In this document: piece by piece, positions 8,275 through 16,966 of the stretch
Numbering within the stretch: position 1 is the first letter of the stretch
Layout of the letters: every line of letters begins with the position of its first letter
Notes under the pieces: model-generated
Told to the model about the DNA's origin: nothing
The model's database searches: none
What the model saw: the letters and a program-made list of their open reading frames with translations, nothing else
Translations under genes and position numbers: made by a program
Origin: Klebsormidium nitens
Taxonomy: Eukaryota; Plantae; Klebsormidiophyceae
Reading direction: 5' to 3'
Assembly (NCBI GenBank): GCA_000708835.1
Contig: DF237067.1
Coordinates: 62,001-126,000, forward strand
Length of the DNA: 64,000 bases

Positions 8275-9031
8275 AGTGGTCGGGTGATGAGGACCCCTCT
8301 AGCCACCCAATGCAAGGCACCCTGGGGAGAGTGGCACCTCTGCTCAAAGGGGAAAACTAAAACTTCTGATCGGAGCGTGTAGCACAGTATAGGAGCGCCA
8401 GCAGACACCCAATGCCACAATGCGGCTCCACAGCCTCAGGGGCTGGCAATTTGAAGATCTCAACGCCAGCCGCCTGCTGAACGAAGTGGGCTCCGCACCC
8501 TCCCGATTTGGCAAATACCCAGTGCACTTTTTGATGCAGCTCTTTTCAAGGTTCACTTTTCTCGATCCCGCTGCGGCTCGGCTGGTCGGTAGACACAGCT
8601 CCAAAAAGCGTGTTGCCTTCGTGTCTAAAATCTTCTCTGTAGCGCCATAGCCAGAGGCGACTGAAGATTACCTGATTGTAGTTCGACAAGAAGGGCCCAA
8701 AATATCCCAAGATTGTCGAGAAATATCCCAGCGGCCTCCAACCGGTCACAGTGAACACTGATACGACCTTTGAGTTCCAACTTTCATTTTCCGGCACTGG
8801 TGACTGGAGAGGAAAGTGGCCGCTGGTACGTACCTGTTTTAGGCAGTATGCACCAGGGGTCCAGGGAGTACGAATTCTAGGCCGTCGATCACCATTGTGG
8901 ATTTGATCGAACGCCTCGACTTGCTCACACAAACCAGTGCTACTAAGCACGTCACATGCATACGTCATGTGCTTTTGCAGATTCTGTCAGAACTCGACAG
9001 GCCGGCCGCGCCGGTGCGGACTGAGTCCGGA

Positions 9032-9168
9032 GCCTAAAAACTGCGGAATGCAAATGCATCCAATCAAAAACGTAATGTCTGATTCTCTAACGCCAGCGCA
9101 CCCTCCGATATAGGTGTTTGGAGGGGCGCCAACGGCCAAGATCTCCTGTTATGGGCCCGAGCTCGCCG
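9032..9168. repeat. Split direct repeat B, terminal copy (137 bp)
   Basis: GCCTAAAAACTGCGG...GAGCTCGCCG is identical base for base to 10093-10229. Confidence 0.97.
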
Positions 9169-9299
9169 GGATGCGGCTACGGGGCACCGGTGGAGTTCGT
9201 ATGGGGCCGTTGGCACCGCGAATGTCCCGGGGTTGCGGGTCAACGCGGTCTGAGGGTCGCTGGCGGTTAATGTCCGGTCAACGCGCGCATTAAATGCGA

Positions 9300-9530
9300 T
9301 CGGCGACCGCGGGGACCAGTGACCACTGAGTCAGTGCATTAGATCAGTGATCAGTGGACTGCCGCACTGCGTTACTGCAGGGAGCAGTGTTAGTAGGGTC
9401 GGGGTTAGTAGCGTAGCGCATTATGCGCGGGACTAGTAGTGCAGTGCAGTACTACCCTGCAGTAGTGTACTGCAGTAGTGTGGTCAGTGTGGCAAGGTCA
9501 CTGACTACTGCAGTACTGGCCCTGGGGTGC
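9300..9530. repeat. CAGT/ACTG-rich low-complexity tract inside the retrotransposon
   Basis: Dense CAGTG, ACTGCAGT and AGTAGTG motifs, e.g. GTAGTGCAGTGCAGTACTACCCTGCAGTAGTGTACTGCAGTAGTG. No fixed unit length. Confidence 0.7.
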
Positions 9531-9598
9531 AGGGAATGACTTTGCGACCTGGGAGAGGAGGGCGGGGTGAATTCAAACTGTAGATTGCGGTTGTTGAA

Positions 9599-11424
9599 AT
9601 GGCGCTGCGAGCGTTAGGGGTTCCTGGGAAAGGGGATGCAAGACTTGCTATTGTGGGCGGGGCTGGGATTTCAAGTGGGGCATTGGAAGTGAACGCCGAA
9701 AGCAGGTAAGGAAAGCTTCGGATCTTTGATAGGTGCAGTGGGCGGGTGGGTCGAAAATTTCATTTTCTCGTCCCTTGAGGGCGCCTCGCCAGGCGCCTTC
9801 TCCTGCTTCTTGAACAAAACACACCTTGAATTGAGAGTCTAACGCCAAGAGTTGTATGACGACTTCTAAGCTAGTTGACGCTTCAGCGCCAGGGTTTTAG
9901 AGGTTTAACAGCCGTCGGCCGAGCGGCCGGCAGATTGCGCACGCGCGCGCCCAGTTTTCCCCCGGTCGGTCGAGGACGGCGGCTAGCACAGCTTATGCCA
10001 CACAAGAGCATTCCCGGTCCCCAAATCACTCTAGGACCTGAAATCATCTCGACCGTCGCAGGTCCTATCGTGGGGGAGGCAAGCATTCCGCTGCCTAAAA
10101 ACTGCGGAATGCAAATGCATCCAATCAAAAACGTAATGTCTGATTCTCTAACGCCAGCGCACCCTCCGATATAGGTGTTTGGAGGGGCGCCAACGGCCAA
10201 GATCTCCTGTTATGGGCCCGAGCTCGCCGCCCCAAAGAAACAATTGTTGGCCAAACAACAGTTATTGAAAAATAAGGTGCCCTTACTTGCAGGAGGGAGT
10301 TCCAGGAGCGATGCCGCGCACATGTGCTGCAGGTGCGAGGCATCGAGGGCGGGCGTGGTGGGCAGTCCGCGGGGAATGTCTGGTCCGAAGCCGAGACGGA
10401 AGCGCTGTATGCGCGTTCCCTTTCCGAGTTTGGGCGCATCGCAGAACGGAAAGTGACGCCTGCAGCCAACACTTCTCGAAAGCGAGCTGCTCGCGAGTTT
10501 GCGGAGTTCCTCGGCAAGAATCCTTACGGAGTGACAATTGAGACGGCCACTCCGGCTGACGTGGGGGCTTTTATCGTCGGAGACTGGTTGCCCAGGCATA
10601 GCGGCAACTGCCGAACAGTTCTGCCGTCGACGGGGCAGACAGTGGCTTCTGCATCAGCTGTGAAGGGTGTTGTTAAGGATTTGTCAAAGACGTACACGCT
10701 GCTCGGTTTTCCCGGGCACGAGAATCCTGCAAAGGCGGAGCCGGTGAAGTCATTTCGAGACGGGTACGAGAGGTACCTGCACGACGAAGGTGTTAAAGTG
10801 CAGAGAGCGAAAGTGTTCTCGGAAGAGAAGCTGGACGCTCTCCTGCGTTTTTTGTCGGAGCGCCTGCAAGCAGAAACTGAAGCTCTGGAACTTTGCACGT
10901 TACTGATGGATCAGGCCGCCGTTTTGTACCTCTGGGAATCGTTGGCGCGGGGGAAGGAGTGCGGAACTCTAAGCGCCGACCAGGTCGAAGGAGGGGCGAC
11001 TCCTGCGGCCTATCCTGGCTGGAGCAAAACAGTCAGACAGGAGCCCAGTGCGCGGATCCGCCTCGCCCAGCCAGCGACGACTTCCCGGCTCACCTTCGTG
11101 GAAGCTGCGGCCCGGTTAGTGAAAGGTTTAGAGCTAATCGGGGAGCACGCAACTGACGGTTACCTGTTCCGCGCCCAGAACCGCCAGCGAACGGGCTTTT
11201 CTCCCGGGCCGATCTCCAGCGCGTGCTTGCGGAAACGGATCCAGCGGCGTCTGCAACAAGCTGACCTGTTCGAGGGCGAAACCCTGCATAGCTTTAGGAG
11301 GTCTGCGGTTCAGCATGCCGCCGTCAATTTGAATTACAACGTAAAGCAGTTGATGGAATTAGGACGGTGGAAAAGTTACTCTGCCTTTAAAGTATACGTG
11401 GAAGAGGTTTGGCAGCGACGCTGA
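9599..11424 (+). CDS. Tyrosine recombinase of the retrotransposon; predicted 2 exons (9599-9705, 10293-11424), 412 aa
   Basis: The ORF 10324-11424 carries the YR catalytic residues: R (ESLARGKE), HxxR (TLHSFRR), W (LGRW) and Y (AFKVY). It has an in-frame TAA at 10273 and no ATG until about 10907. The upstream exon MALRALGVPG...NAES ends at AG|GTAAGG (9706) and joins in phase to TTACTTGCAG|G (10292). The YR identity is firm; the splice is inferred. Confidence 0.85.
9768..10095. repeat. Split direct repeat A, internal copy (328 bp), abutting the internal B copy
   Basis: 9768-10043 is identical to 16457-16732. Then comes a 21-nt extra segment (10044-10064), then 31 nt matching 16733-16763 with one mismatch. 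Confidence 0.97.
10093..10229. repeat. Split direct repeat B, internal copy (137 bp)
   Basis: Identical to 9032-9168; overlaps repeat A by the GCC trinucleotide. Confidence 0.97.
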
Positions 11425-11498
11425 ACAGAATTGTTTATATATCAATGTCATGATCCAAGTCCTGCACACTTGAACCTCATGCCTGCGCTATCAAATGT

Positions 11499-12392
11499 CT
11501 ACCACCTAATGCCGAATGCTCTCAGCTTGTACATCGCTGGGTTTACAGTTCCTTGTGGAACTCTGAAGCTGGGTGTACAAATACTCGCGCTGCGCGGCAG
11601 CTCCAGCGGCCCCGTCATGCAGGCCTCCGTGCCAATGTTTTGGAGCGCCATCCACCAATTGGTGGCCGGCGCTTCAGGCACGATGATGACGCAGTCCGTT
11701 CGGTACCGCCGCACCGCTTGGATGACGTCACTTAGCAAGCGCACAGGGGGGAAGACCCATGCCACGTCCCCCGGCGCCAGCAGCTCGCTCCAGTCGGTCC
11801 GCATAGCGTCTGCTGCCTGGGCCCCCGGGGCCAGGTGCAGGCTCACGAATCGCTCCGTGACATGCCACGTTTCGGACCCGAATAGGTCGATCGCCGGCTC
11901 CACCCCGAAGTGGCTCAGGACCCTGCGCACTTCCGAATCCCCGAGTCCCCAATCTGAGCTGTCCTGGTGCTTGCTCAGATCGTCTTCTTCCTGCATCTCC
12001 GCCCGCGGCCGCCACTGCGCGATGATGTCAAAGTCTGCCTCCACGCACAGCTCGAAGAGCTGCCTCACCGCCTCGTTCACGTCCGGCGCCCTGCTGTTCA
12101 TGGCGTTGACAGCCCGCACAGCACCCTGGTTGTCTCCCAGAAGGAGGACCGCCGCACCTTGGAGCGCGTCCCCCGCTCGCGCGCGCGCCTCTGTCAGCAC
12201 TCGGAGGAACGCGACCATCTCGCGCGCCGTGCTGGACATGCGCTTCTCCTCGTCGGAGAGCGCCCCGGCTACTGTCAGCTTCTCCTTTCCTGGGATCTTA
12301 ATTGTACCCCCGAACCCCGACTCCAATGCGTCTGAGCCTGCTTCAACCGCAATGCTGCGCGGGTACCACCGCTGCGCGGGTACCCGTTCCAC
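11499..12392 (-). CDS. RNase H plus DIRS-type adenine-methyltransferase-like domain (C-terminal Pol), frameshifted from RT
   Basis: RNase H acidic residues in GSDALESGFGG, STAREMVA, LLGDNQGAV and EEDDLSK. These are followed by DLFGS...DAMRTDW...AWVFPP...VIIVPEAP..NWW, which matches the MT domain known from DIRS elements. Confidence 0.88.
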   Translation of the reverse strand: MERVPAQRWYPRSIAVEAGSDALESGFGGTIKIPGKEKLTVAGALSDEEKRMSSTAREMVAFLRVLTEARARAGDALQGAAVLLLGDNQGAVRAVNAMNSRAPDVNEAVRQLFELCVEADFDIIAQWRPRAEMQEEDDLSKHQDSSDWGLGDSEVRRVLSHFGVEPAIDLFGSETWHVTERFVSLHLAPGAQAADAMRTDWSELLAPGDVAWVFPPVRLLSDVIQAVRRYRTDCVIIVPEAPATNWWMALQNIGTEACMTGPLELPRSASICTPSFRVPQGTVNPAMYKLRAFGIRW

Positions 12393-14084
12393 TCGTCGAG
12401 GCGCTGCAAGAAGGTCCTTGCCGCTTGCCGCGCGGATTCCGGCGTCTCGAAGACGTCATCCCAGGTGAGCTTACCCTGGATGGCGGCAAAGAACGGGCGG
12501 CTGTACAACGCCGCCGGGAGGACCGCCGGGCTAACCGATATCACCTTACCGGCCACTCTTGCCAGCAACCGGGGGGTTACCTCTGCGCACTCTGCGAGCT
12601 CGCGCAGCGCAGTGCGCAGCTTCTCCATCTTGGCGGGGGAGACCGCGAACCTTTGCCGAATTGTGTCGATGACGAAGCCGAGCCACGGCCCCTCCTGCTG
12701 GGGCCACAAGTTGCACTTGGGCAGGCTGAACACGGCGCCGAGCAGGGTGAGGGTTTTCACCACGAGGACCGTCGACCAAGCACACCTCCAAAAGTCCAGG
12801 GTCCCCGTTAGTCCGTCGTCGAGGTAGCTTGAGATTGGGATGCTCCTCAGTCGCAGCTCCTTGGCTGCTTCCTGCGTCAGCAGGGTGTAGACGAAGCAGG
12901 CTTCCGACCAGCCAAAGCACATGCCGTTGTAGTGCATGTACACATGGCCAACCTTGATGCCGAAGTACTTGCGGTAGGCTGGGTGGATGAGGAGGTGGTA
13001 GTATCCAGCCTTGAAGTCCCAGGTTGTGAAGAAGCCCCGCTCTGTGAGAAAGGTCAGCACCTCTCTCAGAGTCTCGTACTTGAACGCCTGGCGTTTGGAG
13101 AAGAGGTTGACGTACCGGGCGTTCACCACCAGCCGCCCCTTCGGCAGGTTTACCACCCCCAGCGGGTTAACCACCTTCGGTTTGCCGTCACTGGGGCCGT
13201 AAACTTCGAGCGTCCTGTTGACCACCATTTTAACCACCTCCCCAACGGCGAACTCGCTATTATCGTAGAACGACCGGTGGTTGTCGAACTCCACTGGGTG
13301 GGGGACCTGACCCGTCAGCATCGCGTCCACTTCTGCCGCCCCTACTGTTCGGGCGAGCATCGATTGGACCTGCTCCCGCTTCTTCGTGTCCGCCTCGTCC
13401 GTTCCCACGAATTGCGGCCGGACGCCGCTCCTGAGCATTTTGAGGACCCGTTTCGACGATTCCCGCTTGGAATCTTTAAGCATCTCTTCCCAAGCTGGGA
13501 GGTGCCTTTCAAAACTGCCGGCGACAAACTGGTCCGGGTCGTACGCGTGCGCCCCGACGTTCTTGAGCCAGTCTTCGATCTCCGCTTTCTGTTCCTGCGT
13601 CATCTCCTCGCCCGTTTTGGGGCCTGGCGCCAAGTCCAGAGTCTCACGCATGGCTTTGCGGAGCTGCTCCTTGTCGGGGGTGGCCGCACTCCTTACTTTA
13701 AGACCCATGAAGAACTGGTGGGAGCAATTCTGCAGTACCGTTGCGCTCCCTCTCACGAGAGGGTCCGACACCAAGTCGGGTTCACTCTCGTCCTGCTCCA
13801 TCTCCGGGGCGATCGATTCTGGACTCGGCGGTTGCGCGGGCGGCTTTGGCAGACTGGTGCCTTCCTTGTGCGCTGGGGTTTGCGGCTTATCGTCGGGCTC
13901 CGCTGGGCACGGCGCATTTCCGCCGGGGCTTGTCGTGAGAAGGGCCTCGCCCTGCCGTCCCGAGACTGTTTCGCACCGAATCCGCGGGCTAACCCGTTCG
14001 GGTGCACCCGTTCCGCCCGCCTTTTGCGGAGGTTCCGGCCGTGTGCCGGCCGTTTCGTTGGCCTTCTGGTCCGGCGAGGTTCCC
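12275..14084 (-). CDS. DIRS-type reverse transcriptase (ATG at 13801; frame open upstream to a predicted splice acceptor at 14084)
   Basis: RT motifs GRLVVNARYVN, WDFKAGYYHL, YNGMCFGW, SYLDDGL and WLGFVIDT. I translated 14084-13801 by hand: no stop codon, Pro/Ala-rich linker. Confidence 0.93.
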
Positions 14085-14852
14085 CTGGCGAGGTTCAGAA
14101 AGGTCAGCTTAGGTTGAGCCGCAGCGGCGGTCTCAGAAACGAAGAAAAACGCTGCGGAGAATCTTTTCCGCCCAGGAATAATCTCAGTTTCACTAACCCA
14201 TATTTGGGGAATTTGACCCCTAAATATACGGGGCCTGCGCGGGGCCGCTTCACACCTGTCGCAGGTTGGGGCATCTTATCGAGGTGAAAAAATCGTTCTG
14301 GCGCCCCGGGTTAGTAATCTGCGTCGCTTAACGAGAAGTTAACCAGTGGGTTAAGCGAGTTTGGCGAGCGTATTTACACCGCGTTTCGCGGTTCCGCTCC
14401 GCGGTAGAACGTCTGCTCCGCGCGCGCGTCGATCAAAAGGAGAGTTCATAGCTGCATCCTTACTAGTTGGGTGCAACATAAAGATCAGTATCCACGTTCA
14501 TGTCATACAAAGTCCATCCGAATGCAGACGCAAGCCGGGCCTCGCTCCGCCTTGCAGGAAGGTGAGCTTCTTACTGAGTGCATTCATTTGCACGTGCCGG
14601 CGCCATAAGGATGAAAGAGGGGCCGATTGAAGAGCCCTTCATTGGGCCTGTGAGACTGACGGACTGCCATGAGACATAACGTCAATGGCGTTCGACAAGA
14701 AAACAGGGGAGAACCATACTAATCAGAATATCAGCCTTTCCACTCGACTTGTTCCGGTCCGTCTACAGTCTTCCTGCCTTTCGTCTCACGTTCGATCCTA
14801 GGATGTTCTGACTATTTTCTTCTTGTGTCTCTACGTCTTCTTGTAGGTCTTC

Positions 14853-16377
14853 TTACCTACGGCCTGATCTATTTGCCGGAGCGCGATTGTCGCGATCTCC
14901 TCTATCATCGCGCTCGCGATCCTCAGGGCCTCGCTTGCCCCCCCAACCGGAGCCTTTGCCGGCGCCGCCGGGTCCGTTCCTGTTAATCGGAGAAGAACGG
15001 ATCAGCGAATCAGGCCGCTTCGGGGCCGCTTATCTGGTGTCAAAGTGAGGCATTTTTTGCCTGGCCACTGTCAGCCCTCTCCGGTCCACGTTCGTGCGGA
15101 GATTGGCCTTAAGGCCACCCATTGCGGGCTTTGGTCCGTTCGGACGTCACGCCCTTTTATGGGCCGCTTAATTTTCAACTCAGACAATCTATTGCCCTGC
15201 TAAACGTCTAACCGACAGCATCAGCACTTCCGCCATTCGCTCTGGCAGGGGCATGACGGCCAACTTACTTGCCTTATCCGTTCCTTCTCGCACTTCACAA
15301 TTAGATCGAGTTTGCGCAGCATCGAAGTGGCATCCGACCAACCCGCTCGCACTCGACAGGCTTCCTCCAGGCCCTTTCTTATGCCAGCACATTTCGAAAT
15401 CTTCTCAAAGGCTGGGTCGTCGGACATTCTCACCTTCCAAAGTTGTTTCCGCCACCTCCTGCGCCGCGCACGACATTAGGGCGTGCGTGTCCTTCTCCCA
15501 CTTGCTCTGCCGCTTCTTTGCGGTACTCCTCGTAAGTCTTTTTGATCTTCTTCTCCAGGTCGCGCACAGTCTCCGCCGACCACGCACTGCTGTCCCCGGC
15601 TTCTTCTAGTGCCAACTTCATGTCTGACACGAATCCGTCCGCTAGGTATTCCAGGTCGAGCGAAACGAAGTTGATCTGATTCGCGTAGAAGTAAACTGCT
15701 GCCATTAGATGGGCCACCTTTGGGTCAGGTTCCTTATAGATCTCAAACAGCTGCTCAAGCTTGGTGTGCCACGCAGGCGAATCGCGTGGGATTTTCCTGA
15801 GTGCCGCCTCCATGTGGGAGATCAGGGAGCCCTTTTGCACAAATTCTTTAAAGGCTCTCTCTAAGCGGGCTGCTCCCCCTGCCAAGTCAGCTTCTCGCAT
15901 GAACCCAGGGGTTAGCGCGTTGATCACTGCAGCTCCCGGCGTAACAGCAGGAGGGTCAGGGATTCTGACCCTTCTTGCTGGCTGCTGTTCTGGAATCTGC
16001 TGCCCCTGAGGCGGCTGCTGAGCCTGGTCTGCATGCCCCATCTGACCCAAGGGCGCCCCGGGCGGAGCCCCCGGGATGGCCACCTCAAAAATATCATGCC
16101 TCAGCCCAAATTCACTGAGCCTGGTAAGCAGCGTGTCCTGGGGGTACCTGGTACCTATGCCAATACTGAGCTCCGACTTGTCAACCAGTCTGTGCAAAAG
16201 CTCACCCCTTGCGTCTTCTAGCCAGAACTTCCCCGAGGCGTGATCCACATCTATTACCCTAGCCCAGAGCTTTCTCCCCGAGCCGGGCAATTCATGCAGC
16301 AAGTACTCTCCGATCAACCCTTGCGGTCCTGCTAAGTGTATGAGGGCAGCCAGCTGAGGCTCCATGCCCTGCGCCAT
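14853..16377 (-). CDS. ORF1 (Gag-like) of the retrotransposon; predicted exons 16377-15434 and 14979-14853, 356 aa
   Basis: A 315-aa ORF at the 5' end of the element ends at GGAAG|GTGAGA. Splicing to CTGAT...TTCTTCTCCGATTAACAG|G continues in frame as NGPGGAGKGSGWGGKRGPEDRERDDRGDRDNRAPANRSGRR*. The Gag role is inferred from position. Confidence 0.7.
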
Positions 16378-16456
16378 CTCTATGCGTCTCTGGGCCGTTT
16401 CTCACTGCCTTTGTACGGGGGAGACCCCTTCAGTGTGAACACCCCCAAACGTACAA

Positions 16457-16763
16457 TCGTCCCTTGAGGGCGCCTCGCCAGGCGCCTTCTCCTGCTTCTT
16501 GAACAAAACACACCTTGAATTGAGAGTCTAACGCCAAGAGTTGTATGACGACTTCTAAGCTAGTTGACGCTTCAGCGCCAGGGTTTTAGAGGTTTAACAG
16601 CCGTCGGCCGAGCGGCCGGCAGATTGCGCACGCGCGCGCCCAGTTTTCCCCCGGTCGGTCGAGGACGGCGGCTAGCACAGCTTATGCCACACAAGAGCAT
16701 TCCCGGTCCCCAAATCACTCTAGGACCTGAAACTATCGTGGGGAAGGCAAGCATTCCGCTGCC
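16457..16763. repeat. Split direct repeat A, terminal copy (307 bp)
   Basis: Matches 9768-10095 apart from a 21-nt indel and one substitution. Confidence 0.97.
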
Positions 16764-16966
16764 CGGGCGTTCCGGCGCGCGCGGCTAGCGCGGCTAGGCT
16801 AGGCTGACGGTCGCGACTTGGCCGAGTCCGGGCATGCATGCAGGAGGATGCATGCAGCATTCAACTTCAAGTTCGAGCATTCGGAAAGACGCTTTCTAGC
16901 TTTCCTGATAGTAACATTGTAACAAAGTTGTGAGCAGCTGATCGGCAACGCCATTGCCCAGTCCTT

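Follow-up and report, generated by a model that had tools for sequence, protein, structure and literature searches.

Retroviruses set the proportion of Gag to Gag-Pol by frameshifting or readthrough, and their unspliced RNA serves as the genome. In the legume element Ogre, only some of the transcripts are spliced so that gag(-pro) and pol become fused (PMC6317226). The copia element of Drosophila and BARE1 of barley use alternative splicing to shift the balance of Gag and Pol toward Gag (PMC3735527). Introns, without a known role, have also been noted in transcripts of kangaroo-1 (PMC1636488, citing Duncan et al. 2002). The PAT/kangaroo/TOC group of tyrosine-recombinase (YR) retrotransposons is defined by split direct repeats and an inverted recombinase (PMC3266345). 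Here we describe an element of this type from the alga Klebsormidium nitens. It lies in a 64,000-nucleotide (nt) stretch of contig DF237067.1, referred to as the window; all coordinates are window positions, and the element is called the window copy. Our reading of this locus, to which we give a probability of roughly 0.65, is that two phase-2 spliceosomal introns lie between gag and pol, that removal of intron 1 yields a Gag of 356 amino acids (aa), and that removal of intron 2 in a minority of transcripts yields a Gag-Pol fusion.

Read 5' to 3', the minus strand carries a gag open reading frame (ORF), a stretch of 1.6 kb with stops in all frames, a reverse transcriptase (RT) frame and an overlapping ribonuclease H (RNase H) frame (Table 1). 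The gag ORF (16377..15430, 315 aa) is 95% identical to the first 314 residues of the K. nitens gene model P0057; it ends in ...GGGGNNFGR, and its TGA overlaps the donor GGAAG/GTGAGA. After the acceptor TTAACAG/G, a frame of 41 codons beginning at 14978 reads NGPGGAGKGSGWGGKRGPEDRERDDRGDRDNRAPANRSGRR (NGPGGAGKG...NRSGRR) and stops on a second donor, CGTAG/GTAAGA, and this mini-exon has no start codon of its own. After the second acceptor, CTCGCCAG/G, a frame beginning at 14083 stays open past an ATG at 13801 and on into the RT. Two GT..AG intervals thereby link gag, the mini-exon and the RT frame (from 14084) in phase 2. When intron 1 is removed in silico the product is 356 aa, and when both are removed an ORF of 958 codons results, which ends at a frameshift between RT and RNase H. 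The original prediction had described a first ORF stopping on a donor at 15433, a 41-codon exon, a second donor at 14856 and an open frame into RT, and in all of these statements about the sequence it was correct. That each stop falls on a donor adds no independent coincidence, because whenever an intron lies in phase 2 and its donor fits the consensus GT(A/G)A, intron positions +2 to +4 form an in-frame TAA or TGA.

RNA evidence bears directly on intron 1. Contigs of three RNA-like runs (X7, X8 and X9) and of a DNA run (X1) were aligned to positions 11000-16800. In X7, X8 and X9 there are contigs of 652, 531 and 263 nt, respectively, that match the window with 0 mismatches and lack precisely 454 nt, an interval bounded by GT..AG on the minus strand; the junction 15434/14979 is obtained by shifting the reported cut by one base. 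The X1 contig 14892-16042 retains the interval; no contig of X7, X8 or X9 lies within intron 1, and no intron-less joint was found in X1. The DNA run covers 30 of 30 bins and the RNA-like runs only 8-12 of 30, which fits an RNA origin of the latter. Since the RNA-like contigs of three runs join 15434/14979 exactly while the DNA keeps the interval, intron 1 is a real and efficiently removed intron, and the splice that had been predicted at these positions is thus borne out to the base.

The same three contigs pass donor 2 (14856) and end at 14774, 14750 and 14751, that is 83-107 nt past the donor. Spliced at intron 1 and reading past donor 2, the assembled mRNA therefore codes for the 356-aa Gag and retains at least the first part of intron 2, and this read-through fits an intron that is mostly retained. 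The ends of the contigs from the three samples lie within 25 nt of one another (14750-14774), about 100 nt past the Gag stop, with no A-tail reported. It could be argued from this clustering, and from the lack of RNA contigs between these ends and 12696, that both introns are real but that 3'-end formation decides the outcome, most transcripts being polyadenylated shortly into intron 2 and only the longer ones being spliced to Gag-Pol. We consider this improbable: no A-tails appear as loose ends on the contigs, there is no AATAAA nearby, and the ends match the onset of indel differences among family copies (14778), so that they are perhaps breaks of a low-depth assembly. Because of the low depth and the coincidence with 14778 they are not taken here as poly(A) sites.

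Evidence on intron 2 comes mainly from related elements, found in the K. nitens assembly (L001, L010 on DF237799.1, L098 and L099), in metagenomes (L002-L006) and in Logan contigs (L007 and L009). These belong to several families whose RT identity to the window copy is 44-71%. Where the contigs reach, gag, a Gly/Asn/Arg-rich mini-exon, RT-RNase H and an antisense recombinase follow in that order. Donor 1 is always in phase 2 and reads AG/GTGAGA, AG/GTCAGT, AG/GTTAGT, CG/GTTAGT or GG/GTAAGT. Acceptor 1 is YAG/G in eight of the nine elements in which it was placed, and L001 has GAG/C 3 nt later; donor 2, which closes the mini-exon, is AG/GTA in every relative. Exon 2 is 96, 120, 123, 147, 150, 168 or 177 nt long, a multiple of 3 wherever it was measured. 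An in-phase YAG acceptor 2, mostly after CTGAY, opens the RT frame in L001, L002, L004, L005, L007, L009 and L010. Spliced in silico, the relatives give 741-906 codons from exon 2 on, and the intact L005 gives a Gag-Pol of 1198 aa from the gag ATG. A stop lies within donor 2 in every relative examined and within donor 1 in four of the seven with a readable donor 1 (L002, L009, L010 and L098), gag continuing for some codons past donor 1 in L003, L005 and L007. Upstream in-phase AGs, including GGGTTAG/, were rejected as acceptor 2, their frame being broken by a 10-nt indel of L010 (14150) and by stops in L002.

Comparison of the window copy with L010 separates the segments clearly. Gag is 90.7% identical without indels and RT likewise 90.7% identical, intron 1 is 65.5% identical with 8 indels, and intron 2 is 78.5% identical with 10 indels, the last at 14150, 66 nt before the acceptor, with donor and acceptor kept. 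The mini-exon is 97.6% identical without indels and differs by 3 synonymous and 0 non-synonymous changes; to judge from such substitutions it is under purifying selection. The leader of exon 3 is 76.3% identical, with no indels and no stops. Among the diverged relatives the splice sites and the phase are kept while the interior of intron 2 diverges, its 3' third being partly conserved. The two-intron, phase-2 layout is conserved in the related elements examined, apart from L003, in which acceptor 2 was not placed. Of the expectation that related copies would keep the splice sites around diverging interiors, everything but that one acceptor holds.

The comparison with relatives bears on the idea that the layout has no function, the host spliceosome cutting a cryptic intron in a dead copy and the GT and AG elsewhere being coincidental. 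The pol of the window copy is frameshifted, GT and AG are frequent, and the open region of this copy alone offers 15 in-phase AGs. Nevertheless the same four sites, the phases and a mini-exon conserved at the protein level recur in the examined relatives of several families down to 44% RT identity, and at 44-71% the relatives are not recent copies of one sequence. With one relative intact (a spliced ORF of 1198 aa) and a mini-exon that lacks a start codon of its own and yet is under purifying selection, we find this idea scarcely credible.

A further point concerns where Pol could start. Only intron 1 may be functional, the 356-aa Gag being the sole product of the spliced mRNA and Pol being expressed independently, from a transcript starting in 14856..14085 or by internal or non-AUG initiation, with ATG 13801 available in the window copy. 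That ATG, however, corresponds to Phe in L010, and L001, L002 and L009 have no ATG between acceptor 2 and the invariant DPL motif, which sits in the leader; Pol has no conserved start codon. A Pol starting only from ATG 13801 would have spoken against the original prediction and is countered by this lack of conservation. Independent expression is also disfavored by a stop that interrupts the frame 4-6 codons before acceptor 2 in L002 and L009, by the agreement in phase between exon 2 and the RT frame wherever acceptor 2 was placed, and by a leader free of indels and stops. Conserved blocks in the 3' third of 14856..14085 could nonetheless be promoter or leader elements of a separate transcript, and small isolated RNA contigs occur in the RT (12516-12695) with none from 12696 to 14750. 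The RNA contigs that read through donor 2, and the lack of an exon 2-exon 3 joint, also agree with an independent Pol. On balance we regard it as unlikely.

We therefore return to the reading with two functional introns. Removal of intron 1 joins the gag core to the 41-codon mini-exon, and because the mRNA form in the RNA contigs retains the beginning of intron 2, translation stops on the TAA in donor 2 and gives the 356-aa Gag with a Gly/Arg-rich and then Arg/Asp-rich tail, which is probably a nucleic-acid-binding tail. A minority of transcripts would also lose intron 2, which would place the mini-exon in frame with the leader and RT/RNase H; Pol would then arise solely as part of a Gag-Pol fusion, and how efficiently intron 2 is removed would determine the ratio of Gag to Gag-Pol. 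This second splicing step is one that we infer, with good comparative support. Both introns are present in all copies, and X1 yields no intron-less joint; reverse transcription would accordingly have to use fully unspliced RNA as its template.

Several observations weigh against this reading. No contig of X7, X8 or X9 shows the joint 14857/14084, all of them reading through donor 2. These contigs have a low depth (2-5) at which rare forms are dropped, and the absence of the spliced form is also predicted by the rival explanations; moreover, the three samples belong to one study, and their RNA nature is the guess of a tool. Donor 2 (TAG/GTAAGA) is not intrinsically weak, so poor splicing of intron 2 would need another cause. 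Acceptor 2 could not be placed in L003, and the window copy itself carries the in-frame ATG at 13801. The ratio of non-synonymous to synonymous substitution rates is no lower in the leader (0.46) than where this frame is continued directly upstream into the intron (0.49), and because it does not separate the two, the coding constraint on the leader rests on the lack of indels and stops. Gene models speak on both sides. The official K. nitens model P0002 joins ...NRASRR/ATEQGV... exactly at the homologous donor 2 and acceptor 2, but P0057 and P0043 fuse gag to pol via other, wrong-frame junctions, which the RNA contigs contradict for intron 1, and gene predictions are thus unreliable. The K. 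nitens annotation holds the gag-pol fusion models P0057, P0043, P0077, P0084 and P0068 (loci L010, L098, L099 and L001), with wrong frames or skipped parts of gag.

Searches for the fused transcript returned little. An exact scan of metagenome contigs with the 3' end of the window mini-exon in search of an exon 2-exon 3 junction found nothing. An 18-nt degenerate word taken from the L003/L004 mini-exon matched 87 contigs, among them one (L034) of a human gut metagenome; none encodes a related Gag or RT, and all are chance matches. A protein search for a transcript-derived fusion with the window leader and RT N-terminus found no matches, and one with residues 1-200 of P0002 returned P0002 alone. 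A phmmer search with Gag found the long proteins P0057, P0077 and P0084, but these are all spliced K. nitens gene models and not transcripts; among Logan proteins, which begin at called start codons, none carries the mini-exon. Among the three products originally predicted, the 356-aa form is the one encoded by RNA contigs, the 315-aa form is unsupported, as no RNA contig covers intron 1, and the Gag-RT fusion stays conditional.

Intron 2 contains more than its splice sites. An invariant 17-mer, AGACCGCCGCTGCGGCT, is the longest invariant run in the compared sequences, no such run exceeding 11 nt in RT and YR coding sequence, and the window holds no other exact copy of it. In the 3' third of the intron, nucleotide blocks (the 17-mer at 14117-14133 and about 14195-14330) are conserved in the four nearest families, whose coding identity is only about 70%. 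UACUAACCC and GGGUUAG are able to pair and could form a long-range stem; all positions are invariant, so covariation is uninformative, and an Rfam scan of the element found nothing near threshold. The blocks may regulate splicing of intron 2, mark the unspliced RNA, or be a promoter or leader of a separate pol transcript, the last being the chief rival view. As a speculation, which we hold as doubtful, Pol in the whole group of streptophyte-alga YR elements would have no start codon of its own and could be made only once an intron that is regulated and mostly retained has been spliced out; within it the 17-mer and the stem of UACUAACCC and GGGUUAG would both brake splicing and mark unspliced RNA for packaging or reverse transcription. 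If so, blocks with such a dual role would explain the survival of sense-strand introns through retrotransposition, and a non-LTR (long terminal repeat), non-integrase retroelement would have evolved independently a logic resembling the retroviral 'psi downstream of the splice donor'.

The window copy spans about 16763..9026 on the minus strand and is bounded by split direct repeats in the order A1 ... B1-A2 ... B2; no second copy of the element lies within the window. An RNA-like contig of X8 extends to 16583, inside A1. About 600 nt of unique sequence (9169-9767) part A2 from B2, a deviation from the split-repeat plan; this intervening sequence is shared with L001 and L002. The recombinase is 65% identical to that of L005, whose Phage_integrase match attains the cut-off (27.1 bits, E = 4.3e-6), and has the C-terminal motif HSFRR...GRW...Y; it is likewise antisense to gag-pol in L002, L003, L005 and L009, and is expressed separately, from the opposite strand. 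Its ORF begins with GTG at 10324 without an obvious ATG, and the unique sequence 9169-9767 lies upstream, past the A2/B1 junction. The nearest proteins are annotated reverse transcriptases of K. nitens, with an RT identity of about 70%. The window element is a PAT/kangaroo-type tyrosine-recombinase retrotransposon of the DIRS order. In a metagenome contig (L005/L006; ENA ERZ26165376, ctg333617_0x_c, 24,859 nt) an intact related element is repeated head to tail about 3.8 times, with a period of about 6.5 kb; the contig may represent a YR retrotransposon in a tandem array or as a multimeric circle, and the suffix _c could mean circular.

Table 1. Features of the window copy, listed along the gag-pol strand from its 5' end.
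Feature	Position	Strand	Description and evidence
Terminal repeat A1 (5' end, transcript start region)	16457..16763	-	direct repeat of 9768-10095, 93-99% identity
Exon 1, gag	15434..16377	-	ATG 16377 to last exon base 15434; ORF, no indels against L010, RNA contig cover
Intron 1	14980..15433	-	454 nt, phase 2, GTGAGA...CTGAT...AACAG; skipped in RNA-like contigs, kept in DNA run X1
Mini-exon 2	14857..14979	-	123 nt, Gly/Arg-rich then Arg/Asp-rich Gag tail; translation, comparison with relatives
Candidate intron 2	14085..14856	-	772 nt, phase 2, GTAAGA...CTGAC...CGCCAG; conserved sites, no spliced contig seen
Invariant 17-mer	14117..14133	-	33 nt upstream of acceptor 2; identical in window copy, L010, L002 and L001
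Exon 3	12275..14084	-	94-codon leader (14083..13802) and RT frame to frameshift-caused stop; frame open from acceptor, RVT_1
8-nt insertion (local duplication)	12376..12383	-	puts RT out of frame with RNase H; extra against L010 and L002, placement ambiguous within repeat
RNase H / C-terminal pol frame	11499..12392	-	297 aa; ORF, continuous with RT in intact relatives
Tyrosine recombinase	10324..11424	+	366 aa, antisense to gag-pol; ORF, Phage_integrase E = 0.023, below cut-off
Internal repeat B1, adjoining A2	10087..10229	-	98.6% identity to 9026-9168
Internal repeat A2	9768..10095	-	copy of A1
Terminal repeat B2 (3' end)	9026..9168	-	copy of B1

The pol of the window copy is damaged. RVT_1 is found with E = 2.7e-6 and 27.7 bits, just below the cut-off of 29.6, a value exceeded among the relatives by P0002 (29.9 bits) and L005 (39.9 bits). 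In P0002, P0004 and P0008 RT and RNase H form a single ORF, and the RNase H frame of the window copy aligns with the C-terminal half of each; Pfam gave no match on the window frame 12392..11499, and in the L005 pol a weak Dam match (E = 0.012) below the cut-off. The 8-nt insertion between RT and RNase H is confirmed by the X1 DNA contig 12231-12477 with 0 differences, and because of it a full Pol is no longer possible from this copy. The window copy is thus transcribed and spliced but pol-defective, and the fusion of about 1214 aa that had been envisaged if the frameshift were repaired is not made by it. One X8 contig skips 139 nt at 12369/12509 (12370-12508), a stretch that spans the site of the 8-nt insertion. 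As an intron this skip was rejected, since its ends are non-canonical (TT..CG on the minus strand) and the contig stems from a copy of 90-95% identity; it is probably a deletion variant of another copy.

The novelty of this arrangement had been overstated, as the splicing precedents of Ogre (PMC6317226), copia and BARE1 (PMC3735527) and the kangaroo-1 introns (PMC1636488) make clear: both the splice-based Gag/Pol principle and introns in a YR element are already known. How elements of the DIRS/PAT type express Pol and control the Gag:Pol ratio is poorly documented, and in the literature searched no conserved two-intron gag/mini-exon/pol module, Gag-tail mini-exon or start-less pol was described for PAT-type elements. 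The window element adds one junction supported by RNA and one supported by comparison across families in which pol often has no start codon. Gene predictors mis-join such elements, as the wrong frames of P0057 and P0043 illustrate, and the correct exon structure would help the annotation of algal genomes. If intron 2 is spliced as proposed, the element would be a clear case of sense-strand introns persisting through reverse transcription, implying that unspliced RNA is selected as template, and the conserved blocks of intron 2 provide a testable handle on that selection.

Among the known systems, kangaroo of Volvox carteri, PAT and TOC3 share with the window element the split direct repeats and a recombinase that may be inverted (PMC3266345), as well as hosts among green-lineage algae; the window element differs in that A2 and B2 lie about 600 nt apart. 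In retroviral control, as in our proposal, Gag is extended into Pol by an infrequent event beyond the Gag stop, but there it is ribosomal recoding and here nuclear splicing, recoding being impossible in the window element because gag and RT lie 1.6 kb apart with stops in all frames. In copia and BARE1 splicing removes pol or creates a stop, giving a Gag-only subgenomic RNA from a single gag-pol ORF, whereas in the window element splicing would be required for any Pol. A parallel in working is Ogre, a Ty3/gypsy LTR element of legumes. There an intron likewise lies between the gag(-pro) and pol ORFs, and the unspliced RNA passes it on to new copies. Removal of the introns creates a single gag-pol ORF in silico, as in Ogre (958 codons up to the frameshift in the window copy, 1198 aa in L005); of the other Ogre feature, splicing in part of the transcripts, the low-depth RNA contigs show only the retained intron 2. 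Ogre has LTRs, a DDE integrase and one intron, against the tyrosine recombinase, split direct repeats, two phase-2 introns and coding mini-exon altering the Gag C-terminus found here. The window element resembles Ogre in its working but, with its split direct repeats and tyrosine recombinase in place of a Ty3/gypsy LTR structure and DDE integrase, is not a member of it, and if intron 2 is indeed spliced, YR elements and the plant Ogre LTR elements would have come independently to a Gag-Pol fusion that depends on splicing.

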